A stretch of 64,000 bases of DNA from Magallana gigas (taxonomy: Eukaryota): positions 22,506,001-22,570,000 of the forward strand of contig NC_088857.1 of assembly GCF_963853765.1 (NCBI RefSeq), in the 5' to 3' direction. The notes beneath the pieces are model-generated. The model made no database searches. It was not told the origin of the DNA and saw only the letters and a list, made by a program, of their open reading frames with translations. Of this stretch, positions 39,382-61,518 are shown one piece after another. How positions within the stretch are numbered: position 1 is the first letter of the stretch; each line of letters begins with the position of its first letter. The translations under genes were made by a program, and so were the position numbers.

Positions 39382-42300
39382 TTAAACAACAGGTGCATTG
39401 TAATGCCGGTCATCCTCAGCAATCAGGACAATGAGGGGCCAGGACTCTCTCCTGTCATCAGGGTAGTAGGTGACAAAGTCTTCCTCCCCGTACTGCTGGA
39501 GTCGCAGGACCTTGATTGTTACTTCTAACGTGTGACCCAGTAAGATCATCTCTATCTGTTAAACACATAAAACAGCATCATTAGTCATACTCAGGGGACA
39601 CACATTTTAGATGTCGCAACATTTTTTGCTTGGCATTATGCACCTGTCTCAAATAACACAGAGTGAACAATGTCCTCAAACAAAGCATGCTTCCACTAAG
39701 GTAGTTACGGTTGATTGCTTTCAGTTAAGTACATACTTATTCAAACTGTCTTCAATTTGAAGAGCAAACAGGCATTAGAGGAAGAAAATCGTCAAAAAGT
39801 ACAAAATGCACTGATTTGAGGCAAGAAATATTCACACTACAAGGTTTACTTTTTTAGCCCTGTCTGAAATGAAAGTCAACTCATCCTATGCACTCACCTG
39901 CTCCAGTCCCCCTGAATCTCCCACAGGGTTGATGTGGTTCTTGAGTAGAGACTCTGGGTTCTCTGAAGTGTCCCTGGCAAACAGCAGCCAAACAAACACA
40001 GGGACGTCATCCCCTTTCTGACTAGCCTCGTACAGAGAGTGGGCCTCCAGGAACATCAGCAGTTTGATGGCCTCCATACACTGGAGGTCCACTTTGGTGT
40101 CAAGGTTCAAAAGGTTAACAGGCCAGCTGTTCCTCTCCTCATTGGTTGAAAGACTTTGACATTCAGAAAACTGTTCAATTTAAAATTAAGAATATGAATA
40201 TTGATGAGTTTAGTCATAATATATGACATTTACAATTCAACATCAGGTTTACCAATATAAAGTTAAAAGTTTATTTTGTAATCTGTTGTTGACTTTCGTA
40301 TTAAATTAGTTGTACACATGTATATGATAATAAATGATATCACTTGAAATCATTTATAAATACGTAGAAAGTAATATCCCCATCAGCAAAAAGTTGCACA
40401 AGGGGTATAATAAGGGGTTAATAAATCCTACAGCAAGTATTCAATCGATACATGTACCTTTGCAAACAGACACTGAACACATTCAGACATGGTCGGTAAT
40501 TTATCCTTCTTGTTAAAGGGAAGTCTGTGGGCAAAAGTCCACTGTGAGAGTCCTGAGTTTGGATTTCTATAGAGAGTCTGTAACCGATTGATCACAGACT
40601 CGGCACTGTTCCACTTGGATAACACATTAATGTTCTGTATAAAGCACTGAAGGAGCGTGCCCCTGATCGCACAGTAATTGTCTCCCCTGACTTGGTGGAG
40701 GTGTCTGCACTCAATGAGGCTTGGAATCTCCTGATACGCCTGTAAAGTATATGAGAGCAAAATGTACTACATGTACCATAATATAATTTCAAGACCCACA
40801 GGGCCACTCTCAAAAATACAACCTAGACTTCCCCACATTTTCTGTTAGTCAACAGTGACTCCCCCACATTTTCTGTTAGTCAACAGCTTTTAAGATAATG
40901 GCATGCAATATTCTAGTCCGTATGTTCCAAGGATGTCATCTTTGTAGGTATGTAAATTCCTGACACAAAATGACAAAAGACTGTTGCAATTTTCATGAAA
41001 AGGATTCAAAGCAATATTTTTAGAGCCTTCTGGTATTCCTACAAATCCATTATAATGCAATTTTTCTTTAATATCACATCACATACATGTATTCACCCTC
41101 AGTGACTCTTTATCAGCTAGCCCAAGAGATTTTCTTTGATGAGCTTGTTGAATTGGATAAACTCCCAAAACATTATCATAATTAGCATACTATGTAAAAA
41201 TATTTTAAAAAGGAAAATTTAACATTACAAACAATTTTAAAATTGCCAAAACACTACAATCATATCAATAATTTTTAATTTCATTTACATTAATGCCCTA
41301 TAGGGTCACTTCATCAATTTACTTGACTAATAAATTTAAACAGCTTCTAAAAATAATTATATTATTTATTAATAATGATATTATTTGTTCCTTTATCATG
41401 ATAGAAACTTTTGGTTTACATGAAACAGTATTAAAATAGCCCAAAACCACAGCCCATTTTACAGATCATCAAATTTCCCTAAACACTTGCTCCATCTAAA
41501 CCATGGCTCAAATAATGGCCCCCTTCAGACAAATAAATTCAGCCACACTTGTCTTTGATGTTCTTATTAGCACCTAAAAAATTTTCATTGACAAACAAAA
41601 AGTTTGCATTGTCAGTTGATAGAATACTTATAAAACATAAATTTGGTAAAGAAATAAAGACAAAAAACCTCCATCTGTATGTATTCATATAAAAATATTT
41701 TAGAGTGTCCACTATTAATTAATCAACAAAATCTGTAAGGATAACCTCCCTTACTTTTCAACATCAGTGTACAATGTATAGGATAGGGAAAATGAAAACT
41801 GTCATGAAGTCATTAAGTCTTGTCTGATCTTAATAAAAAATTGCAGGTGCACATCTTCAGATTGTGTTCAACATATTTACAAATTTTCGGACTGTTCCAT
41901 GCAGTAGTAAAAAATTCTATAGGGGGTACAAAATTGCATCTACAGACAGACAGACAGACGGAGAGACGGACAGGGTGAAACCAATATACCCCCCCCCCCC
42001 CATAAACTTTATTTGCGGGGGGGTATGATAAAATATGCATTAATCAATACACAAGACTTCTTAATTAATTGAAGGTTCCAGAAACTGTCTTTAATCTTGT
42101 TACAGAGTTCATGTGTGTAAGCAAGGATCATAGATGTGAACAGTGGCTGTGTAGTGGGCGGTACTGAATGTAAATAAAATCTTAACCCTTGCTCTGCTGC
42201 GCGCACATATATGTGCGCATTACAGAGTGTGCGCTACCATGCGGGGCGCACATATATGTGCGTTTCAATGAAAAACAGACGATCACATTTTGTCTGGATG

Positions 42301-47950: not shown

Positions 47951-50900
47951 CTGTAAAATACAACATGCCATCTGTTAAGTTGATCAGTATAAAAATCAGA
48001 CAGGTACTGTCACTCAAGCAGCTGTAACCGTTTCCTCTAAATTTACAGAAAATTCATGTAATATTAGCATGCAAATTAATTTATAAATGGACTAAAAAAG
48101 GGCACCTAGATTGATAAAACACAACTGAAATTTCAAAATGTCATATTCCCTTATTGCATAAAAAACCACAATATAAAATATGCACGTGACAGTGTTTTGA
48201 AATGTATATGGTCAGGTACATACATAAATGGTGACAACTGGTCGAACATTCGTCTGATACAAGTATATCACAAAACTGTTAGGAAAGGAATTCTATAGAT
48301 CTGATTTCACATAAATCACTCAGCGGACACATATTCATTGATTAATTGATGAATAATTTGGCACATGTTAATTGATGACTTGATGAATAATTTGGCCAGA
48401 TAATACAATGTAATGTAAAAAAGAGTTAACAATTACTTTTGTGCATTTTTTTTTACAATCGTTAATGTAGCTGATAAATTTTGATTAAGATTAACACTGA
48501 CATTGATAAAAACCTTTCAATAAAACACTAGCTTAGTACAAATAAACGGGGTTTAAATTGATAAAAAAAAAAAACAGCCAAGATCTTGAATTTCTGTAAA
48601 AATTCTTTCATTCATTCTAAATCTATAAATTGCATGAAAATAAAAACAAAGAGAAATGAAAGAAAATTATGTCCTAGAAATCCTTGGCAATCAAAGCAAA
48701 TACTTAAATTTTTGTCTTAAAATGCAAACTTCAAATATTTGAAAAACTGATAAAATTGTAGATGTTTTTGTCTCTATTTTGCTGCCTTTCAATATTTCAA
48801 AGCCATCTATATTGGAAAAAATATAGATCTACAAAAAACTGGTCTCATGCATTTGAAACCAGGAAGCAAATATAAATATCACACACCACCGTTACGTAAA
48901 AGTAATTCCTAATACAAGTACTAATATCTTTTTTTATTTGTTTACTGTTACCTTTCATTGAATGTCCCCCTCTAAACCGAATATTTGTAATCCACAAAAA
49001 ACAACCCATGACAATTGGGTAAAATCAAAATAAAATAAAAATCCCTCCTTAAGTCTCTCCGCTGTGTGTATGACAGTTGTCTTCCATTGTTTGTTTATCT
49101 GCCTGCTAACACCGCATCTCTCATTGCTATGGTCACAGGCTTAATGCCACACAAAGCCCTACACAGATAACTGATGCAAAGAATTCACGCGACGCAATTA
49201 AAAATAAAATTCTCATAAACCATGCAGTCCTTGCGCCAAAAGTTAAAAAAAAAATGTATTGTCATGCAAGGCTAGTTTTATAGGGAGAGGGCATGAAACG
49301 CTGAAAACAAAAAAAAACAAATGAGCAAAACTTGGCTCTTTATGTTTCTACACCATCAATTATGATTTTTACACCTAACATGCATGTCTCTTTTTAACTA
49401 GATTTTTCTAGACAGATACAAAGCTTTCCATTAATAAGTCCATGATAGTTTTAAAATTTTTCTCATATAAATTTGACCACATTATTTCAATATTCAAATT
49501 TGAGAGTTTTTATTATGCAGAGATAAACCTCTAAAATTTTTTTATCACCTTTTAACATAATGTACGGAGCTGTTTCATGTTCTAAGAAGAGGCATGTAAT
49601 TCTAGAATGACAACTTAAAAACAACTGAGGTCATATATCCCAATCTCCCACGACTGACTGATTAAACATTTCCGTGAGCATGCAACTATACCTTTGATAA
49701 TTCATTCAATTAAGAAAAATGAACCCATTATATAATGGTATCAGTTTAACTGTTTTGACAATTTAAAATTCTCATTTGATACATATCCTAATCAGGATAA
49801 TGCCAAGGATGTATTGTTAACTTTGATAACTTTGCAGTATCTTTTCTAAAATTTACAGTATCAAAAAGCAAAAAAGTTGTATTAAAATGGGAAGGGCAAC
49901 ATTTTTGCAGCCAAGAAAAAAACAAAATACCTTATTCAATACAGTACTAGTAACTACATGTGATTTGTATTTTTTATTATTTACATTTTTCAGTGGTTTT
50001 GCCTGTGGTAACACTACGTTTCGATTTTAGTACTATACAGTCCAATAAATTCAAATGACATATAATTGGGGCACAAGCGGGGTTTGCTTATATAATATAA
50101 TAATAATAGTTTATTTCCAATTTTGGGCTCAGAGGGCATACAAGGTTACAGATATTAGATAGAAATGCCTAAAAGATAGATTCTACATATAAAAATAGTC
50201 CATACACATACATGAACTTGTAACATTCAAATAGTTGTACAATTGCTGAAAATTATATAAGTAATAAGGTATCATTCTTTGAATATTATGAGGTGATAAT
50301 TTTGGTCGGGGCGTGATCAACTCTATCATAAAGCCCTTCTGGATTTGATTACGCCCCCACCAAAATTATCATCTCATAATACTCAAAGAATGATTCCTTA
50401 TTCCTTTATTAACTCAAATTTTGTAAAAAAATAAGTACCGGTGTTGTATAGCAGTTTTTCCCCCATAGTAGCTTCTCCCCCCGGAAAACCTACTATATAG
50501 TAGACTTTCCCCCTGGGGGGAAAAGCTACTATATAGTAGCTTTTCCCCCATAGTAGGATTTCTCCCTCGCGTTTTTGGATCAGATTTTATAAAAAATATT
50601 TATGGAAACCCAGTAAGGATTAAAATCAATGTTTCTACACTTCCAGGTTGTATATCTGCATCCATCTGTCAGGTTAAGTTTCGTTTTGCCGATTTATTAT
50701 TTTTATAGACAATGCCGAAAATTGAACATGTGTATAATGGAATAATACGTAGAACTTAATTAAATTAGGTAATTAATTGAAAAAGTACTTGGTTTCACAA
50801 GATATACACTTACGTGTATATGTGAGTGAAAATGATTTGAGAATTTTGTAATAAATCTATCACTCCGTCTGCAAATTTTATTCAAGCTAAACCCCTGTTT

Positions 50901-51314
50901 TAGAGAAATTTTGTTTCCGATGTTTAAAATCCTATTATAATGAATATAGTGCATATTCTTTAGGGTGCCATTACTCATAAACTAGAGATAACCACATCAC
51001 CATATATTTACAGTGGCAGTGGTTAACAACTTGTTGATGACTCTAAAAATTTGAGCCCTCAGGGTAGGGGCCCTCATTGTTTCAGGGCCCGATGTTTAAA
51101 ACCCCATTATAATGATTGAATAGTGATTTATAAGTGGGGGCCCGAATATCAAATTATAGAGATGACCACTTAACCATATTTTCTCAGTGGTAGTGGTATA
51201 GCACTAGTATATGACCCTTAAAGTTTTAGTCCCCAGGGTAGGGGCCCTTAATGTTTCCAAGCCCGATCTTTAAAATCCAATTATTACGAATAGTGTATTT
51301 TTTAGGGCTATATA

Positions 51315-51353
<39 letters not shown>

Positions 51354-53204
51354 AGAGATGACAACATCAGCATATTTTTACGGTCATTAGAAAGTAAAAG
51401 CATCATTTGAAAATACACACTCACTTCTATATTTCCTTATCAAAATGGTTAAAAACTACGTTTAATTCTGCTTTTCTTTTTAAATTTACGAGCAAAAATA
51501 TAAAAAAAGGTACGCGGGTAAAATCATTATTTTTCAAAACATTTAATCAATTCATAAGATGACTAATGATATAATAAATAACTAAATAAATAAATCAATG
51601 ACTTTTTATTCATGAAAGTAGCAACCGAAAAATTGTATATTTATAAATCACTTTGCAAAATAAAAAGCGGGAAATTTTGCAGGCAGTGAATGATAATATT
51701 TACATAAGGTTAGTTAAGGCTCCATTTCACATTTTCCAGAGTGACCATCAAAGATACCGACTTTGTTCTGGTTGTAAAGTTACATTACAAAAATCTTTAC
51801 ATCATAAAACCTCGCGTTTCGTTAAAATTGTGCTTAAAGACATGAGTATGAATATGCGTGACTTTAAAACAAAATTGTAAACACTAACTTTACACATGCC
51901 TTTAATACATAATCAATTAAAATACCCCTTACCCATGATTTAGAAACCCATCAATCGAAGTAAAACATTTCAGTTCCTCATCATATCATTGCACCCTTTC
52001 TCTCGTTTGATATTTAGAAGTAGAAATATACGATTATATTTAAGATCGTCAATTCTACCGGTATTAAATTATTCTTATTCCCTTCCTCTACAAAATTAAG
52101 TCAAATTTAGTCAGTTTCCTGGGAGGAGCTTATACATAGATGATAGTACATGGGAAAAATAGAGTTCCAAACCGGCATATTTTCATTCAAATGTATTCTG
52201 ACGTGTTCTGTGAAAATGTCAATGTCATAACGTCGAAGTCAAAACTGTAGATAAACATCGATTGGATGAAAAAGATTCGAGGTATTCTGAAATCCATGTA
52301 AAAGGTGTTGCAAAAAGGTGCAACAAAAGGTGAAATAAATGGTGACGACACGGGAATGTTATGAAGGAGCGTGCCTTTGTTCATATCAGGGTTGAACAAA
52401 CCATGTATTTTATTCTATGCATTAATAAATGCCATAATTATCCTCTTATTATTGCCACTAATGGTCCGCCATAAACATGACCGGAATTTTAAAAAAGGGG
52501 GAAAATCTACTATGTAGTAGGTTTTCCGTGGGGGTAATCTGGCTATAAAAAGGGGGAAAACCCACTATATAGTCAGCTTTCCGTGGGGGAAAAACTGCTA
52601 TATAGCCATTCTTCCGGGGGGAAAAACTGCTATATAGCCATTTTTCCGGGGGGAAAGATGGCTAGGGGGAAAAGGCACTATATAACACCGGTAAATAAAA
52701 AATAAAAATAAAATATCTTAGACAATGCAAAAGAAAATTGATGCAAAAGATTAACCAATGCAAATATTACTCATTGACAAAATATGATCCTGAACCCTGA
52801 ACTGTTACTAAGCAATTTGCATTTCAATTTGTGGGTCATAGACCTGTTTTTTTTATCAATAGGTCAAAGGTCAAGGTCACAACTGTTAGTGTTTACAAAC
52901 TAAAATACTCATCAGAAACTTTACAAGATAATGATGTGTACGAATAACATTTTTATAGCTTTCCCATTGGAGTAATAGTTTTTGCCTGTCTGTGAATTGT
53001 CCAATACCAAACTAAACTGACTAGAGTTATTCTAATCTACTAGTAACTTTGATCTTTTTAAAAATCAGTCCCCACCAAAAATAGAAAAATTACCTATACC
53101 ATTGTAGTGGTATATATTTATATGCATGCATTCATGCATTGTTAAGAGGCTTATACTAGCATGTATGTCTTTGGGAAATATCAAGGATTGGAAGTTGCTT
53201 GTTC

Positions 53205-53239
<35 letters not shown>

Positions 53240-56200
53240 CAACAATCGGCATAATAAAATCAGCTTTATGGAGACATATACAAAATATCTGGACAATGAA
53301 GTATATCATGTAGATCCTTTATAAATAAAAATTGATTTTGCCCCTGGATATTCTTATTTTTATAATCACAGGATGATTTTCTCGTCATATCACATATTGA
53401 GCATTGCAGTTTTTGAAAAGATCCTAAAAAACTGTTTATAAATGGGATATAAACCTATACAGTGAACTTTGAACCCCTTGTAAGGCCTAGGAATCCTCCA
53501 ATGGCCTAAATCTCACCAATTTTATAAAATCAATAATATGTCAACATGCTTGCATTATACCATTTCAGTTTTTGTGAATAATTGGATGTTTTCCATTGTA
53601 ATATTGGACCCCCAATGTGGCCCCACCCTACTCCTGAAGATCATGATTTGAACAATCTTGAATCTACCCTAACTGAGAATGCTTCCACACAAGTTTCAGC
53701 TCTCTAAAAATTCAACCTCCCCCTCCCTCCCCCTCCCCCCATTGTGGCCCCATCCTACTCCTGAAGATCATGATTTGAACAAACTTGAATCTACCCTACC
53801 TGAGGATGCTTCCACACAAGTTTTAGCTTTCCTGGCCGATTGGTTTCTGAGAAGATTTTTAAATATTTACTCTATATATTCCTATGTAAAAATTCAACCA
53901 TCCTTGTGGTCCCACCCTACTCTTGTGGATCATGATTTGAACAAACATGATCTGGATGTACTTAAATAGATATATTTCAGAGTGTTTACTATAATTACTT
54001 GTCTGATCTTAATAAAAATTGCAGGTGCACATCTTCAGATAGATTCAACATATTTACAAATTTTCAGACTACTCCATGCAGAGGTTAAAATTCATATAGG
54101 AGGAACAAAATTGCGTCTACAGACAGATCGGGGTATAACAACAGTATGTAGCATGATAAATCCAGCTTAGTTACCAGAAATCCAAATGGTATCTAATCAG
54201 TTACCAGTAAATGGGGTTTTTTCTCTTTTATTTCTTTAGTAGCATTTTTCCGACCTTGACCTTTGACTCATGGCCTTGCCTTGAACAAATTAGTTTGTTG
54301 TCATGATGCCATTCTTTGTCAATGTTACATTTTCTTTTCTAAAGGACCTTAACAAGATCAAAATACAGTATTTTGCACAAAATGAAAACTGAATGAATTG
54401 AAGGATTCCAGAAACCCCTTTTATATAATTGCAAACAAAAAGAGACACTCTGCACACCACACTCAAAATAAAAAGAAACACAAAAAAATCTTTTCTTTTT
54501 TTTTTATCAAATTTCAAACTTCAACAAAAACAAATATGGCAGCAACAACAGTATAATTTGAAGTTCAACTTAACAACAAATCAAAAACAACAAAAATAAA
54601 CAAATTACTAATAATTTGTAAAGCAAAAGTGAAAAGAATATTAGCAATTTAAAGCATGTTCTTGAGACATTCATTTAAGAAATTTGTCATTTATGTACAT
54701 TTCATAAAAAGCATGCAACTTTGCAAGTTGATTTATTCAAATAAATATAAAAATAGCATATTATCAAATGCACATGCAATTATCAAGCACATTTTTTTTT
54801 TTCATTGAAAAAAAATCATGAAATAAGATAAGAAAAAATGAATGGAATAATGTCATCACCAATCATGGCTTTAATAATTGCTTTTGTGTTAAATATTAGT
54901 GCTATAAGGTTAGAAAAAAAGCCAAATATTCAGTCACATTTAAATAAGTATGATAAAAAGATCTAGAAAAGTTAAAGAAAGTGAGAGCAAAACTCAGTCA
55001 GAAACAAGCACATCCAGGGAGTTCTGCCTTTTGGTCCATTGAATACAGTATACAATCCTACATTGGTAATTATCTTAGAGATCAAATAGAATATCCAAAG
55101 AGTTCTGACAAAGCCTTGCTCTCTGTCTCATTGTAACCAGAATGAGCATAGGCAAGAAATAATTGACACTTCTTAGTCTTAGAATCTACACCTACTGTGA
55201 ATGAAAAAGTGTTGTTATTCTGGTCAATGTAGTAACCTTCAAGAAGAGAAATGAAGTAGCTGGGGGTTTTCCCTCTTCTAACCATTTTTTCCCATTTACC
55301 ACCACCCCCCTTTCTCAGTTTCGCCCAATCTTTACCTGGAGAAAATTCTCTGGATGAAACCAACTCCACTGGATCCATATCAAAGGCACTGTCTGTATCC
55401 AGTTCATCTAGAGTTGTCTGTCCCTGATCCATCTGATCACTGTAGACGTCACTGTCACCAATCAGAAGTTTATCACACGCTTCGAAATTGTCAGACAAAA
55501 AAATAATAGCACCATCTGACGTGGAAATCTTTCTTTCTTTGTCTTCAGAGTCTGAGGCATCTACATTATTGTAAGATCCCTGAGATTCAGTCACCATTTT
55601 TGACGGAAGACTGTTGACGCGTTTCATCAGAGACTTTAACTGACTTTGACCTTCGCTGTCCCAAGAAAGGTCAATGCCATCAGTGTCAACTGCACTTTCG
55701 CTGAGAGATGTGTCGCTTTGCGAGCGATGAAATTTCTCTCTAGCTTTCTCCACAAATTCACAGGCCTTTTTGGCAAGCGGATCACTAGGCGTGTACTCCA
55801 TATCGTCCTCGCTGGAATGTTTTGCTGCTAACTGTTTCAGTTCATCAAGTTTTGCAGTTAAATCAGCGAATTCATCAACAATATCATCTACTTCGTGTTC
55901 AATCTTTTCAAAATATTCTCCCGTTGATTGGCCTACTTCAGCAGATTCTGTAAAAATTTCATTTTCACTCAAACCCGACAAACTTTCTTGTCTCTCACAA
56001 CTGTTACTCCTTGCATATCTACAAGGTGATGCATCCGGAGAGGAATTTAAAGAAGTTGATGTACTAGATGTGTTAATTTCATGAAGTCTTTGGAGAAGTG
56101 TTTGTCTGAATTGACCATCAGGGCATTTGGCTCTGTGTAGAGGCGAGGAATCTATCTCGTCGTCATCAACACTTAAATTTCCTGATATATCTGTTGTGTA

Positions 56201-59200
56201 GTTACTAAAGAGTTTTGCACTTCCACTGGAGTGAAAAGGTGAGGTATGGTTTGAACTGTCTGTAGTTTGCCAAACACAAGCCGACTGGTCAGCGACATTA
56301 ATTTCATCACCAATTAAATCCTTACAGTCAGTTGCAGATAGATTTGAAATAAGATCTGGAATGTTCTCTGAAAATTTCACAGAAGGTTTTTGTTCACCTG
56401 CAAGTTTTTCCTGGTTTTGATTGTTTCGGTCATCATCTGATGGGGGAGTCAATAAAACACTGCTGACAGTCAAAAGATCCTGAGAACTAGACACATCTAT
56501 CTGTAAACTGTCGCCAGAAGAATCGTACAGGTGCGCCTTGCTCGACTGGAAATGCTCATCGAAGCCGTATTTATAGTTCCTTTCATACAAAGACTTAAGA
56601 CTGAGATTTCCCTTCAGTGACCCGCTATTCGGTTCTGCGGCACTAATGTCAGATGCACTGTGAATTAGTCTATCTACCAAGTCCTCCTGAACACGTGAGG
56701 AGCTGTCCTCATGAGGATTCAGAAGACGAGTTTCGTCGTCATCGGAACTTCTCCTGTGGGATCGCTGGTGTTTTGTTGGCCTCCGCTGTCGGACAAGTAT
56801 GGGACTGGTCGCCTGGTTTCTGGTACGACAGCTGCCAAACTGCACACCATTTACTGCATCATAGCGAACTGGCACCGTCTCATTGGAGCCAGAGTTTCCC
56901 ATCTCATTCTCCTCAACATCTGCCTGAAACATGAATTAAAGAAAACCAACCCATTAACATACCATTTGATAATTCATTCACTATCATAATTGAACAGAAA
57001 CATAATCTATATGCAGATATATCTATTAGTATATGATTCAATAAATACAACAAAAACCCTAATTAGAAAACTGTAGGTTAATATATTCAAGAATTGTTTT
57101 GGGTGTAGGTTGTTTCCTAATACTGAGGAAACATTTAAATTTGTGGGGGCCAATTTTCGTGGATTGTTGGGTTTTTGCTTATTCGTTGGGATGTAATTTT
57201 ATGGATGCTTCGGTTTTCACTTCTTTAGGTAAAAAAAAAAGCACGTTCAAAATTTATTATTGTCCAGGATGTATATTCGTGGGGAAAGCTACCTTCAAAT
57301 ACCACGAAAATTGAGCCACCATGAAATCTAATGATTTTACAGTACTAGTACAATATACTTCCTCACATAGATAAACTACTGACTGCTTCATAAGCTGACT
57401 AGTAAATAAGTACTCAAGCACTTTACTAAACCTGTAAACCACCATATCCTTATTGCCCATAGAAATCCTTGTCCTCACATTATATCTCCTCAGCAGTACA
57501 TGTAATCTATTTTACAGAGTACAGCACATGTTTACTCAAAAAATGAGATTGTTTATTTAAATAAACTTTATTTGACAATTTAAATAAGTATATTTCTTTT
57601 TAAGGAAATAATTCAGGACAACTTTATTTACATGGCTTCATTGTGGTTTTCCCATATCCATATACTAAAAAACATCTTTTTTCATCCTGTTCTAATTAAC
57701 TGATTTTTATTTTAGGCCTTTCTGGAAGTTGTCTGAAATAATTAACATGGATTTTACAAATTTCCAATTTCAATATGTCAGAAACCAGATGGCCTACCAT
57801 TTATATAAAACTTATAGTGCATATTCATGAAATCTATTTTTAACGTTAGGTCATTAAAGATGGAAGATAGAACAATACTCCATTTACTAAATAGACGCAA
57901 ATATGATAATAATCAGATCTTCTATGGTAAATATGTATGATGTCAAAGAAAAAGGACAATAAATGTCGCAGACAGAAAGGCCTGCAAAGGATAGGGTATC
58001 CTCAATAAAACTGGCCTGCTTAGCAAGCCACACAAACTGTCTTGGTTATCATTACAAGTATAATGCGGGTATGTCAGATGCTGTATCCTCCATTCCTGTG
58101 CAGTTCCAGTTGATCTATTGATTATCTGTATGTGTCATTACTCGGGCATCATTATACATTACAAAATGGTGGCTTCACTACCACGCAGTGTTCTTTCTGC
58201 GTACCGTAATAAACTGTTTGAATTCAATTTCACTTCTAGAGACAAAACACGTCAACTTAGTAATAGACAATGGTTCAAAAAGGTCAATGGTCAATTCTAA
58301 GATATCATTAAAGCAACAGCATCTATTCTATGGAATGAAAATCTCCTTTCAATGAAAAATCAACATCTTTAGACTTGTCTCTGTGATTAAGAAGAACAGG
58401 ACACCGTGTTTAACCAGCCACAAGTCACATGAGAAGATTTAATGTGACACAATGAGTCATGGAAATCGAGAGACAACCCATGAACAACAAATTAAAGCAT
58501 TTAATTGACAGGCAAGGTCCTCTTAAATTTTCTTGAATAAAGATCTGTCAATCAGTATGTGGAATACTTCATTAGTATTATCCACATGTACTAAAAACCA
58601 ACCAATTTCTTATGACCACAAAACAAACATTTCACAGCCAGATTAATGTAAAAGCACTCAGGATCTCAACAATAGGAACTGCATACGAGGTGAAGGTCAT
58701 ATGAACAATATCTACTGGAAGCTTATTTTACAGAGCCATAAATTCAGGTATAGCCAAATCCATTACAGTCATCATAGAATAAAAAACATCTTTGTGAAAC
58801 AGAGAGAGATTATAGACACATCTAACATATGTACCCCGACGACCAATACACATACATGTATTACACATTCTGACACACAAAAACATGGACAAAAAAATCA
58901 ATGGAGTAAAATCTGCCAAGTTCTCTGCTCAATACTCACGGTGCTTAGTTCACAGACACACAGACAGACGGTCCCATCCCCTCGACCTTAGTCATACCCT
59001 GCATTGATCTCGCTACATGTGACTGTAGCTCACAAAGTCTGAGTCCTTGACAATCGGACTTCCTGTCATAGTCGAAGGGGGGTAACTCTCAATTCAGACT
59101 GGGTGAATGAGAGATCAATGAGGAGATTTAAATCGGCGGCCAGACAAGGTGGATTTGTGATGATTCAACATCGAGAGAAAGCCGGCCCTGATATTGATCA

Positions 59201-59918
59201 CCAAAGTGTGCCCAATCGGTTGGAGGGAAATTATTCAGGATACCTTAGTGGGAAGAAATACATTACGTAATTCAGGATACCTTAGTGGGAAGAAATACAT
59301 TACTTACCTAAGTCAAGGTTCTGTTGACAATCACTTTTGCTATATCATTTCTACCTTAATATCAGAGTCTACTTTCTCTACTTTCTCTATATAAGTGACT
59401 AACAGGCATAAATCTTGGGATGGTATAGAAATTACTGTAAACTTCTGGCAACCAACAATGAAAGTATCCTTAAAAAATCCTGATTATAACTAAACCCAAA
59501 TCCAAACACAAATTACACAATTGCTCACACTGAATAAAAATAGTAGGGAAAGTACAGCATTCAAAGACACAGTCTACCCTAATGCAAAATGACCTATCAA
59601 TGACCTATCAACACGTCATCACACTTTGTGTCTATATACCCACTTAACTAAATGTTAGCATTTTGACTTTGATACACTGTCCATACCAGGTTCTTGCATT
59701 AAAAAAAACAACAGTGTTATTTTCCTAGTACTTACATCATTACTTTGGTCGCGCTGGCAGGACTTGTCTGCGGTGTAGACTGGTTCCCTGTCCTTGGGGT
59801 CCGACGGAAACAGGCGACAGTAGAGTTTGTACAGGAGGTAGCTTCCTATTCCAAACCCAATACCAATGGCACAAAGTACTGTGGCCGCTTTGGCTGAAAG
59901 AAACGAGAGCCCAGACAT
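39382..59918 (-). CDS. OTULIN: Long model: N-terminal TM anchor, ~540-aa acidic/Ser-rich region, OTULIN domain (875 aa)
   Basis: Adds exons 59736-59918 (ATG 59918, donor GAT|GTAAGT) and 55300-56923 (acceptor TTTCAG|, phase-1 donor G|GTAAAT), joined in frame to 47950. Total 2628 nt = 876 codons. The linkage to the OTU exons is inferred from phase only. Confidence 0.6.
40831..40886. repeat. Perfect 25-bp direct repeat (period 31)
   Basis: CCCCACATTTTCTGTTAGTCAACAG twice. Confidence 0.9.
41810..42032 (+). mobile_element. HINE-like 3' end; related copy at ~54000-54135
   Basis: AAATTGCAGGTGCACATCTTCAGAT unit, GACA microsatellite, and terminal CCCCCC...GGGGGGTAT hairpin. Confidence 0.6.
43293..45056 (+). 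CDS. piggyBac transposase (PGBD-family DDD, 587 aa)
   Basis: Acidic N-terminus. Catalytic D226 (AIDESM), D305 (YCDNYY) and D412 (GAVDRSNQ), spaced 79 and 107 apart. C-terminal Cys-rich domain CIVC...C...CRQC...LCISPCFEIYH. No stops or frameshifts. Confidence 0.95.
   Translation: MADRDNIIEEIFADSDSDGEDNFEGFDLEDLNTTELDDESIHANYNVLNSELWNEGDRTPLPLSFEQEPGLQKEVSDSDSPIEYFELFLDDFDYQNISDETNKYADQFLANKQLKEKSRFKKWRDTTASEMKKFIAIVIAMAIITQMDISEYWTVNPVTSTPFFPSVMSRDRFLLLLAFLHLNDNDKYIPRGVEGHEPLFKLGPLYHRILTKFRSVYKPNQALAIDESMVAWRGNLSFRVYSPDKPVKYGLKAYVLCDSENAYCLRFKLYTGKKSVQPSENGATYDLIMDLMRNYFEKGHILYCDNYYSSPRLFMDLWVLGTGATGTVRSYRKGIPDKLKKAQLSNRGDTATMSYGPLSCLKYLDAKAVYLISTTDTSVNVETRRPDFMRNHEAKVRPSMVHVYDQKMGAVDRSNQMVENYKLGIKTMKWWKKLIFHIINIAIVNSYILYKENCSFNNAMVQRHFRRKLVEQLIQSSGGSITTPLGRPAPRVLERLTGRHFLDKLMEGEKPLHRQCIVCGPAEREMLPPLRPGEKRKRRCGHMTSYKCRQCNVSLCISPCFEIYHTKQEFLLAYKRSRLSSNSSTEE
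45228..45416. mobile_element. Fold-back/MITE nested in the piggyBac 3' region
   Basis: ~77-bp imperfect inverted arms (CAGAGTATTATTTGAATT...AAGAAAATTGCCCTT(A/G)GTTAGACT) around a ~35-bp spacer. Confidence 0.75.
48952..49245 (-). promoter_or_regulatory. Candidate internal promoter/alternative first exon of OTULIN (ATG AAA G|GTAACA)
   Basis: CpG-richer patch with E2F-like TTTTGGCGCAA (~49232-49242). ATG at 48958 and a phase-1 donor at 48951 are in frame with exon 47950 (MKGSLNIGPKQ..., 275 aa). Confidence 0.35.
50263..50402. mobile_element. 140-bp palindromic element (second family)
   Basis: ~57-bp imperfect arms AATAAGG(T/A)ATCATTCTTTGA(A/G)TATTATGAG(G/A)TGATAATTTTGGT.GGGGCGT(G/A)ATCAA; loop contains AAAGCCCTTC. 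Confidence 0.75.
50438..52691. mobile_element. Non-autonomous CMC/EnSpm-like element (2254 bp) with subterminal repeats and internal cargo
   Basis: TIRs CCGGTGTT(G/A)TATAG, TA on both sides, multiple CTATATAG/GGGGGAAAA subterminal repeats at both ends. Internal tandem units start at 50981, 51155 and 51351, with a 34-nt poly(A) at 51318-51351. Confidence 0.75.
53205..53950 (+). mobile_element. HINE-like element with ~3 Cg170-like units
   Basis: AACAAGAGGCCCATGGGCCACATCGCTCACCTGAG 5' end; repeated GTGGCCCCACCCTACTCCTGAAGATCATGATTTGAACAA units. Confidence 0.8.
55082..56923 (-). CDS. Large coding exon (acidic, Ser-rich, low complexity, short coiled coil); frame stays open to a stop at 55082
   Basis: 614 uninterrupted codons in AT-rich DNA; GC and codon composition are clearly coding. 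Confidence 0.85.
   Translation of the reverse strand, partial: ADVEENEMGNSGSNETVPVRYDAVNGVQFGSCRTRNQATSPILVRQRRPTKHQRSHRRSSDDDETRLLNPHEDSSSRVQEDLVDRLIHSASDISAAEPNSGSLKGNLSLKSLYERNYKYGFDEHFQSSKAHLYDSSGDSLQIDVSSSQDLLTVSSVLLTPPSDDDRNNQNQEKLAGEQKPSVKFSENIPDLISNLSATDCKDLIGDEINVADQSACVWQTTDSSNHTSPFHSSGSAKLFSNYTTDISGNLSVDDDEIDSSPLHRAKCPDGQFRQTLLQRLHEINTSSTSTSLNSSPDASPCRYARSNSCERQESLSGLSENEIFTESAEVGQSTGEYFEKIEHEVDDIVDEFADLTAKLDELKQLAAKHSSEDDMEYTPSDPLAKKACEFVEKAREKFHRSQSDTSLSESAVDTDGIDLSWDSEGQSQLKSLMKRVNSLPSKMVTESQGSYNNVDASDSEDKERKISTSDGAIIFLSDNFEACDKLLIGDSDVYSDQMDQGQTTLDELDTDSAFDMDPVELVSSREFSPGKDWAKLRKGGGGKWEKMVRRGKTPSYFISLLEGYYIDQNNNTFSFTVGVDSKTKKCQLFLAYAHSGYNETESKALSELFGYSI
59233..59303. repeat. 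Perfect 34-bp direct repeat (period 37)
   Basis: ATTCAGGATACCTTAGTGGGAAGAAATACATTAC twice. Confidence 0.9.
59736..59918 (-). CDS. First coding exon encoding a hydrophobic signal-anchor/TM segment
   Basis: MSGLSFLSAKAATVLCAIGIGFGIGSYLLYKLYCRLFPSDPKD...; perfect GTAAGT donor; phase 0 matches acceptor 56923. Confidence 0.75.
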
Positions 59919-61429
59919 AACTCAACATGCCTCCAAACACTTTAAACTACTGCAAAATTTTGTTGATGGTTGAGTATCAATTCTAAATCTTTACAAAACA
60001 ATGCATGCATTGGCATTCCAGCAACGCTCAGGAAGTGAGCAACAAAGTGGTGGTATATTTTTATTTTCAAAAATCTGCAGCAAAGAGCACACATTTAGTC
60101 TAAGAAAAGTTTTTATTGTTTAATGGGGAAGAAAAGTTCATGATCATATGAAATTAAGAGAAAGATGATACATGTATTTTATGATGCAATGCAACTGAAC
60201 AATTTTCAAGCATTCTCCCACTTTTTCAATGAAATTCTATGAAAAAAAAACATCTGCATTCTTAAGAAGAATTAAATATACCGGTACATGAAACCTCTGA
60301 TTTATCTTGCAATGAATGATTTTAGGCTTTTTTTAAATCCAACAATGAAATGATTCAATATCGATTTCTATAAAAATTTTCTTGAAAAACAAATCTTAAA
60401 AAAAGAATACATGGAGATAAAAGTACTAAATTCTGTTAGTACAGGTACACTGTGTTCGCTTAGTCATTACTCAATATGAGTACTAAGTTGATATGGACTT
60501 TAAAACATAAACTAGTTCTCCTTTTGTAAGCTCTCTACTGATAACAAATTTGTCAAAAAGAAAAATAAATAAATGCCATAATATTGGTATACTATAGTAG
60601 AAAGCGCTGAATAAATCCATAATAAGTTACCTATGATTGACTTGATCACATTTTTTAAACACTTCCTCATCATAGAAAATTTTTCCCTTTTATAAACTAG
60701 AGTCCTATTCCACCACAATCTTCTGAACTCCTAAGATAAGATAAACAGTCAAAATCAAAAGGCATGGTGTCAGCATATCCCAAGGGCTACAAATTGTAAT
60801 ATTTGTTACAGCATGTTACCTGTTAAAACAGATTATCTCCCTTTGGTGCAATTAAACTTCACACTCTCACCCCTCTAATTAAACACGTCACACACTGTTA
60901 ACATTAAGTCTGGTGTCACCCCTGCTGTGTTTGTATAACTATTATAAACCTTTTAACCCCATGCAGTAATAAGAACTATATGCAAGCAGGTATGGAATCA
61001 ATGGATTTGCAGATTAAAGTCTGAACAATGAATGACAGCACTTGCACTTAGCCTTGATTTTGCCATGCTAACCCCCACGTAATGGGTACACTACTAACAC
61101 AAGTTTATATCTGTGTACGAACTCTTGTCAAAAGGTGAATTTGTCAAGGTGATCGAATCAAAGGTAACACGTGTAATGCAATTGTACCAAAAGATTATAC
61201 AGTCTAGTTTATGAATGTCATTTACAATACTAAGGCAACAGTACATATAAAAAAAAAACAAGTTAACAAAATCCGTGATATCATGTGGCACTGCCATATG
61301 AATGCATTGTGGGATATGTATAACCTGATAGGACAAATACTAAACAGGCTGTTTTACTTAACAATCAAAACATTAGAAATAATCTTTTCCCCATTCAATT
61401 TTACAGCTTTTCTTACCATGCAGACTCAC

Positions 61430-61518
61430 CGTGATTCTTGAAAGGCTGAGGTAACACGAAAACCTTCACAATCACTGACATTTTCCTTACGGTTTTTTTC
61501 AAATCAAACAGCCATTTC
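61430..61518 (-). other. Possible 5' UTR exon of the TM/OTULIN gene
   Basis: CAG acceptor at 61519-61520 and ACG|GTGAGT donor at 61429. Its ATGs give only short or out-of-frame uORFs. Confidence 0.35.

Follow-up and report, generated by a model that had tools for sequence, protein, structure and literature searches.

OTULIN is the main eraser of linear (Met1-linked) ubiquitin chains and has been studied almost solely as the soluble human and mouse enzyme that docks to LUBAC, the complex that assembles linear ubiquitin chains. Its paralogue OTULINL is a pseudoenzyme bound to the endoplasmic reticulum, the purpose of which is unexplained. Here we report on the OTULIN-family gene located on the minus strand of a 64,000-nt stretch of the genome of the oyster Magallana gigas (C. 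gigas in the databases; NCBI RefSeq assembly GCF_963853765.1, contig NC_088857.1, positions 22,506,001 to 22,570,000; this whole stretch is called the window, and positions are counted from its first letter). We assign a probability of about 0.72 to the reading that this gene is the single oyster co-orthologue of OTULIN and OTULINL, the product of which is held at membranes in two alternative ways and is built to cleave Met1-linked chains.

Human OTULIN (FAM105B, Gumby) is a cytoplasmic protein of 352 amino acids (aa), in which the Tyr56 PUB-interacting motif (PIM) docks the PUB domain of the ligase HOIP and the C-terminus carries a PDZ-binding motif. Its catalytic triad Cys129/His339/Asn341 and the ubiquitin-contacting sites S1 (L259, E314) and S1' (W96, T100-K102, Y91) were defined by mutagenesis, and OTULIN was described from "selected invertebrate lineages" in which LUBAC occurs as well (Keusekotten et al., PMC3690481). 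The inhibitory role of Asp336 has been reviewed (PMC7862380). In human OTULINL (FAM105A), an endoplasmic reticulum-associated pseudo-deubiquitinase, Asp139/His350/His352 replace the triad and ubiquitin is not bound, while weak Ub-Ser esterase activity was reported in a 2026 preprint.

Compared with human OTULIN, the oyster OTU domain is ~42% identical over 270 residues and has the same triad and autoinhibitory Asp, similar S1/S1' residues and a HOIP-type ligase in the same genome, whereas the oyster protein carries an anchor helix or an MGN start, a linker of ~530 residues, no conserved PIM and no C-terminal PDZ-binding extension. With OTULINL it shares family membership, a helix of moderate hydrophobicity on the N-terminal side of the OTU domain and an aromatic-basic-Leu-Tyr flank (FWYCRRLY in bird and turtle, LLYKLYCR in oyster). 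However, the OTULINL helix precedes the domain by ~30-40 residues, the oyster triad is complete, including the catalytic Cys and Asn341 lost in the turtle and bird OTULINL sequences examined, and the oyster sequence lies outside the OTULINL clade. Teleost otulina and the long OTULIN-like proteins of sharks (590-980 aa) resemble it in having a disordered N-terminal region, an intact OTU domain and predicted N-terminal membrane targeting, but they start with MGN[CS]CC, carry a canonical EEDLYR PIM ~30 residues before the domain and have no transmembrane helix.

We propose that this OTU-class cysteine deubiquitinase would cleave Met1-linked ubiquitin chains and that the choice of the 5' exon would set which of two membrane attachments it uses. 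Most transcripts include the exon for a glycine-zipper helix of moderate hydrophobicity, proposed to span the membrane once and placed after a conserved helix-hairpin module or after short alternative N-termini, whereas in a minority the helix exon is skipped and translation would start at an MGNSGS consensus, for which myristoylation is proposed. By means of an acidic, mostly disordered linker of ~530 residues that includes three conserved helices, the cytosolic OTU domain would in either case be able to act on linear chains close to the membrane, which would come from the oyster HOIP-type ligase. A third product ends within intron 2 and lacks the protease.

Catalytic domain and predicted Met1 specificity

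A protein search with the long exon placed the locus at C. gigas LOC105343394 (minus strand, 99% identity), and the isoforms of C. angulata LOC128165242 likewise showed 99% identity. The product is named "Ubiquitin thioesterase otulin" in UniProt and "uncharacterized" by NCBI. The oyster gene was annotated and named before this analysis, and the enzyme family is known as well; it is the anchored multi-isoform architecture and the evolutionary reading that appear undescribed. In the literature searched, a membrane or lipid anchor in non-mammalian OTULINs was nowhere described. Within the 564-Mb assembly, the family profile PF16218 (Peptidase_C101) was found only at this locus.

The last four exons, all on the minus strand, are colinear with the 265 positions of this Pfam profile. 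The first of them (47859..47950; profile positions 2-29), linked to the upstream part of the gene by an RNA joint, encodes the S1' ubiquitin-binding helix with the equivalents of Y91, W96 and T100 and the EWRG motif. It is followed by an exon for the catalytic Cys within GDNYC (40458..40739; 31-116, also placed by the alignment to human OTULIN), an exon for the helical arm with the L259 equivalent (39898..40170; 122-209) and the last exon, which contributes the equivalents of D336, H339 and N341 within EDDRHYN and the TAA stop codon (39382..39555; 210-265). The individual exons matched with E values of 5e-6 to 1e-25, and membership in the family follows from the full-length profile match. The oyster OTU domain matched human OTULIN chains at an E value of 5e-61 and FAM105A at 2e-48.

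An earlier note on this DNA, made from the sequence alone, had pointed to GDNYC, EDDRHYN and EWRG as retained motifs. All three are present and align with human OTULIN, the first two column for column. Residues Y91, W96, T100, D126, N127, C129, L259, D336, H339 and N341 are identical in both proteins, hence the triad and the autoinhibitory Asp336 are complete. Among the key contact residues, the changes are solely Q101K, K102R and E314D, all of which are conservative, and Asp at position 314 is common to every non-vertebrate examined. In an AlphaFold2 model based on 28 orthologues, the predicted local distance difference test (pLDDT) exceeded 90 over residues 660-933, and the modelled OTU domain matched OTULIN crystal structures with template modelling scores (TM-scores) of 0.90-0.92. 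Because the catalytic and ubiquitin-contact residues match those of human OTULIN, Met1 specificity of the oyster enzyme can be inferred on good grounds.

Alternatively, the OTU domain might be intact but prefer another linkage or bond, e.g. that of ubiquitin esters, or its main task might be to bind ubiquitin. The three departures from human OTULIN and the weak Ub-Ser esterase activity of human OTULINL would fit such a function. We consider this improbable, as the mutagenesis-critical residues C129, W96, L259, D336, N341 and Y91 are kept or conservatively replaced and Asp314 is also the state of those non-vertebrates that have LUBAC. Moreover, the OTU fold superposes on the Met1-diubiquitin complex 3ZNZ with a TM-score of 0.91, and the genome encodes a HOIP with a linear-chain-determining domain (LDD).

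Two other protostome family members deviate at key positions while the anchor helix is kept, namely P0044 of the annelid Paralvinella (W96F, T100A, N127S, N341H) and P0280 of the nemertean Tubulanus (N341D). These may be lineage-specific pseudoenzymes or model errors.

Transcript isoforms and predicted membrane attachment

Two stranded polyA RNA-seq runs (X21, X22) and two RNA contig sets (X5, X7) were evaluated over positions 55230-61200, where all RNA reads derive from the minus strand; isoforms numbered by NCBI in a similar way are always called isoforms here. The anchor helix is encoded by an internal exon at 59736..59893 (minus strand; AKAATVLCAIGIGFGIGSYLLYKLYCR and 27 further residues), supported by RNA joints, conservation and the AlphaFold2 helix. 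Its acceptor (59895-59894) and its donor (after 59736) are both set by RNA joints. The joint 59736>56923 connects it to the long exon (55336..56923, minus strand) and was found in 3 reads of X21, 29 reads of X22 and in contigs of X5 and X7. From the long exon, the joint 55336>47950 leads into the OTU exons. It is represented by one X7 contig with a 255-nt loose end, the shown start of which is the beginning of exon 3. The donor reads CAG before and GTAAAG after the cut, and all NCBI isoforms read REFSPG before and SLNIG after the 55336/47950 junction.

The helix exon is entered from alternative first exons. The first coding exon of the isoform X5 type (MMRKCLKNVIKSII) was located by tblastn at 60631..60673 (minus strand) and is confirmed by the joint 60631>59893, with one read in X21, two reads in X22 and one X7 contig. 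The corresponding exon of the isoform X4 type (MSVIVKVFVLPQPFKNH) lies at 61430..61481 (minus strand), beyond the RNA-covered stretch. It was placed by tblastn of the P0003 N-terminus and by reading out the sequence, ends in phase 1 and is followed by a GT donor. The first exon of isoforms X1/X2, encoding GQGISLDLCG, is located outside the window at the equivalent of positions 64337-64570 and is known from an RNA contig: one contig of 1983 nt starts at 55335, covers the long exon and then the helix exon, and continues into the GQGISLDLCG-encoding sequence.

The earlier note had joined six segments into a protein of 875 aa beginning with an N-terminal hydrophobic helix. These segments have GT-AG borders and do join in frame into 875 codons and a stop. 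Nevertheless, the 875-aa product is not among the supported isoforms because the 5' end of its first exon and its donor at 55300 are both wrong. The ATG at 59918 and the residues MSGLSFLS are intronic, with RNA contigs and reads entering the exon at the internal acceptor at 59893. There is no depth excess upstream of 59893, and the ATG is therefore absent from mature RNA; the depths of the two helix-exon bins are in the ratio expected for an end at 59893. The hydrophobic segment itself is real and conserved, though its exon is internal. Likewise, the postulated transcript link between the transmembrane exon and the OTU domain exists, with the long exon joined to 47950, but it uses the donor at 55336. 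At 55300, RNA contigs run past unspliced or splice at 55336, and only a model from 2012 (K1R9M9) uses this donor. The further candidate donor at 55237, close to the edge of the RNA-covered stretch, is less likely, given that conservation of the tail continues as far as the stop codon ending at 55082.

For LOC105343394, NCBI annotates six isoforms, which range from 795 to 933 aa. The supported products with the helix have 869, 872, 924 and 933 aa, and the one without it has 795 aa. The gene model drawn from RNA-supported borders equals isoform X5 (869 aa) save for four substitutions. Between the window and the RefSeq protein these are R144H, A197T, N234T and Q716K (isoform X5 numbering). Many base differences of intermediate frequency were seen at 55970-56883 in the two raw-read RNA runs, a pattern that fits the high allelic diversity of oysters.

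The anchor segment, AATVLCAIGIGFGIGSYLLY, consists of 20 uncharged residues bracketed by lysines; averaged over 19 residues, its Kyte-Doolittle hydropathy is 1.86-1.94. It occupies residues 82-103 of the canonical isoform, where a conserved helix and beta-hairpin module lies directly upstream. AlphaFold2 models it as a helix over residues 81-106 with a pLDDT of 66-73. Outside the OTU domain, this helix is the best-conserved element in 23 of the 24 aligned protostome proteins. The pattern K-A-[AT]-[GST]-V-x-C-x-x-G-x-G-x-x-x-G-[ST]-x-x-x-Y-[KR]-[LI]-Y is shared by bivalves, gastropods, a cephalopod, two nemerteans and an annelid, while insects and crustaceans possess a version shorter by four residues. 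An uncharged stretch of ~20 residues, charged flanks and conservation in orthologues are thus combined as in a single-pass anchor. Because conservation acts at the level of single residues and includes the spacing of the small ones, it points to a helix that would pack against another helix in the membrane rather than to a merely greasy segment. The C-terminus is presumably cytosolic, since ubiquitin is required by the OTU domain and a cytosolic lipidated form is predicted for the alternative isoform. Neither the linker nor the region of the helix nor the alternative tail described below had a significant match in Pfam, and a search of the ESM Atlas with residues 1-125 gave no usable match.

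It is conceivable that the helix is not a membrane span and the protein is soluble. It could be buried as an oligomerisation helix against the helix-hairpin module, a conserved potential packing partner, or be cleaved in the short isoforms like a signal peptide or mitochondrial presequence. Its high glycine content, its only moderate hydrophobicity and an AlphaFold2 confidence of just 66-73 would agree with this. We rate this as unlikely in view of four points: the 20-22 uncharged residues stand between Lys/Arg and an aromatic Y-K-L-Y belt, with a small-residue spacing that is invariant across phyla more than 500 million years apart; at residues 82-103 of the canonical isoform the segment is too deep for a signal peptide; unrelated and much more hydrophobic N-terminal anchors (Kyte-Doolittle 2.8-3.3) fill the same place in cnidarians; and fish carry lipid-anchor motifs. 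Together these points argue that membrane attachment is a trait under selection.

The second predicted attachment concerns transcripts without the helix exon. An alternative non-coding 5' exon at 58940..59030 (minus strand; 5' limit approximate), known from an RNA joint and from NCBI isoform X6, skips the helix exon, and its joint 58940>56923 was covered by 12 reads in X22 vs 29 for the helix-exon joint. It has an in-frame TGA four codons before its end, and the first in-frame AUG thereafter opens the sequence MGNSGS, the start of isoform X6. Located eight codons inside the long exon, the motif M-G-N-x-x-S is kept in 15/15 aligned molluscan, nemertean and brachiopod sequences, and a P-V-Y-Y...G-V-x-F hairpin that comes after it is conserved as well. 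Annotation places the start at this motif in Lingula and C. gigas isoform X6, several transcript-derived open reading frames (ORFs) start with it, and it also occurs in a barnacle and two hemichordates. The N-myristoylation consensus is M-G-{EDRKHPFYW}-x-x-[STAGCN]-{P} (PROSITE PS00008). On a transcript with this Met first, MGNSGSN fits the consensus, and the short isoform is predicted to be N-myristoylated. Use as an alternative start is the best explanation for the motif because an internal Met-Gly is conserved in an otherwise fast-evolving region.

Between either attachment and the OTU domain lies the product of the long exon (~529 codons), acidic, Ser-rich and mostly disordered. In agreement with the earlier note, the acidic disordered region comes from this single exon. 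It has an isoelectric point of 4.45, with 100 Asp and Glu vs 50 Lys and Arg, and contains 85 Ser in 529 residues. The pLDDT is below 50 over most of it; conserved linker helices occur at residues 401-415, 460-499 and 513-530 of isoform X1, the latter two with a pLDDT of up to 87.

In addition, the donor at 55336 is frequently read through into an extension of the long exon at 55082..55335 (minus strand), supported by RNA contigs and a conserved tail. The depth of the unspliced form was 9.2 vs 7.2 for the spliced one in X5, and it accounted for 61 of 105 in X7, while other intron stretches had almost zero RNA depth. Beginning with the codon at 55336, 84 codons can be read before a stop at 55084-55082, and the core of the alternative tail reads SLLEGYYIDQNNNTFSFTVGVD. 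Downstream of the stop, ATTAAA follows at 209 nt and AATAAA at 347 nt. In ORF P0011 of another oyster, the body of which is 81% identical, identity falls to 54% in the tail; two in-frame indels occur there, and the stop is shared. The predicted read-through product is hence an anchor-linker protein without the OTU domain.

This conserved open C-terminus with its own stop and polyA signals, together with the large share of the read-through form (about half of the transcripts in two RNA sets), could also indicate two separate genes, an anchor-linker gene ending at 55082 and a downstream OTULIN gene, which are occasionally co-spliced, so that anchored OTULIN would be a minor chimeric read-through. 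We regard such an arrangement as very improbable. The OTU part has no separate start, with exon 3 beginning in phase 1 inside the first helix of the domain, and PF16218 occurs nowhere else in the genome. The earlier note had made its proposal depend on the linkage of anchor and OTU domain in orthologues, and this was borne out: anchor, linker and OTU domain form one protein in >30 species of four protostome phyla, with co-conserved linker motifs. The alternative tail is conserved among oysters only and is therefore a younger feature.

Two further elements reside in the introns of the gene. At ~57120-57344 (intron 1), both strands showed very high RNA depth, reaching ~2000 in one of the contig sets, and many reads continue into unrelated sequence, as for an interspersed repeat expressed from many loci; a search of Rfam with this intronic repeat gave no match. 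Intron 3 contains, on the opposite strand to OTULIN, an intact ORF of 587 aa for a piggyBac-type transposase (43293-45056, plus strand) with a full-length match to PF13843 (E value 2e-88). No convincing terminal inverted repeats were found flanking it.

The oyster layout within the OTULIN family

In a maximum-likelihood tree of 54 sequences, gnathostome OTULIN (93/89) and the OTULINL clade (100/100) are sister groups, while hagfish, tunicates and all invertebrates are placed outside, and the oyster sequence groups with those of other molluscs. By this tree, the oyster gene is not an orthologue of vertebrate OTULIN after the split from OTULINL but a single-copy co-orthologue predating the duplication into these two genes in jawed vertebrates. 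The earlier note had called the protein a hybrid of OTULIN and OTULINL. This description had to be given up, with the split lying inside the vertebrates and the oyster protein outside both clades; the placement suggests that the oyster layout is older and not a mix of two vertebrate designs. Conversely, the suggestion in the same note that the anchored, active form could be the ancestral state gains support from the tree and from the taxonomic spread of the anchor, and the anchored layout looks ancestral for animals.

Long OTULIN-family proteins (500-1250 aa) with intact GDNYC/DDRHYN occur in all groups compared here, as well as in a brachiopod and in hemichordates. The conserved glycine-zipper helix is common to molluscs, nemerteans and an annelid, in most of which the catalytic residues are intact. 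Insects and crustaceans combine its shorter form with intact catalytic residues. The latter are also intact in cnidarians, in which an unrelated, strongly hydrophobic N-terminal anchor is followed by a basic run, in tunicates, for which no anchor was found, and in teleost otulina and the long forms of sharks and rays, which have the MGN[CS]CC myristoyl-palmitoyl motif and an EEDLYR PIM. Of 210 family members in which the OTU domain is complete, 71 start with the N-myristoylation consensus (proteins P0055-P0125 and others), and within these 71 almost all teleost otulina and shark/ray long OTULINs start with the dual-acylation motif MGN[CS]CC.

OTULINL carries a hydrophobic helix throughout the species compared. 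The earlier note had described it as inactive. This holds for amniotes only: the triad is lost in the turtle and bird sequences examined, whereas the OTULINL proteins of a lungfish, two salamanders and a frog keep Cys-His-Asn. These four (P0179, P0219, P0368, P0380) bear the database label 'inactive', yet W96 is kept in them, too. Homology of the protostome helix to the OTULINL helix is suggestive only, with hints coming from the aromatic-basic-Leu-Tyr flank that both possess and, in lungfish, from an IGVGI run, and the cnidarian anchor may be an independent gain.

These comparisons led us to a broader reading, which we hold tentatively and at somewhat less than even odds. Membrane attachment would be ancestral and still prevalent across the OTULIN family, effected by devices as different as the protostome glycine-zipper helix, the cnidarian anchor, the MGNxxS start, the MGNCCC of fish and the tetrapod OTULINL helix. 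The soluble, PIM-docked OTULIN of land vertebrates would then be a derived exception, and OTULINL of lungfish and amphibians would still be active and membrane-bound. With the same reservation, the alternative myristoylated MGNxxS start might be ancient, being represented in lophotrochozoans, barnacles and hemichordates.

Linear-ubiquitin setting and implications

A HOIP-type ligase locus was identified on the minus strand of another stretch of the assembly (G000 contig C3:19599657-19612810; loci L004, L005, L008 and L010). The LDD and the HOIP-UBA domain occur together there and a PUB-like exon is found 8 kb upstream, in the right order and on one strand; by itself, this exon (IGVALNILEKYCRHLLKPPVERSQMWRVVKFSNNIFRDRV) is a weak match (E value 0.098). 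Orthologues of HOIP and HOIL-1 had been catalogued earlier in Aplysia (PMC9334734).

The canonical PIM ([DE][DE][LM]YR..EIE, ~30 residues before the OTU domain) is confined to gnathostome OTULINs and is missing from the oyster protein. In Crassostrea, DSDVYSD is found 42 residues before the OTU domain, with the Tyr replaced by Cys in Ostrea, and nothing comparable occurs in other molluscs. Since the PIM is unconserved and the PDZ-binding extension is missing, recruitment probably depends on the membrane anchor and the conserved linker helices at residues 460-499 and 513-530 of isoform X1.

Several observations weigh against a membrane-held Met1-specific enzyme as proposed here. Protostomes have no conserved HOIP-binding PIM, and the literature searched contained no enzymatic or localisation data for any invertebrate OTULIN. 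The helix is moderately hydrophobic, with a Kyte-Doolittle value of 1.9 and four glycines, and a rough Hessa-scale sum gives about +1.8 kcal/mol; insertion of the Sec61 type is therefore not guaranteed. By the positive-inside rule, the basic short alternative N-termini could favour the opposite orientation. The helix-less joint 58940>56923 was listed in only one of the four RNA sets. Finally, the read-through form without the OTU domain represents roughly every second transcript in two RNA sets, and the anchor-linker part may for this reason have a separate job of its own.

A single-nucleus study of oysters lists OTULIN among the genes of the delayed response to ostreid herpesvirus 1 (OsHV-1). 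Because the gene is single-copy, this entry should be the gene described here. A role of oyster OTULIN in immune signalling can be inferred, and with this listing it becomes a candidate regulator of antiviral signalling.

The oyster gene presents an intact OTULIN catalytic domain with a predicted membrane tether as the usual state outside land vertebrates, with tethering predicted to rely on two devices that are independent of each other and both deeply conserved. Candidates for naturally active, membrane-bound forms are oyster OTULIN, fish otulina and the OTULINL proteins of frog and lungfish. The comparison also makes the origin of OTULINL testable as retention of the anchor and loss of catalysis in amniotes only. 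If the broader reading is true, linear-ubiquitin erasure would have begun close to membranes, and the human pseudoenzyme OTULINL would be a relic of this state. Judging from this layout, the site at which linear chains are trimmed seems no less important than the trimming activity.

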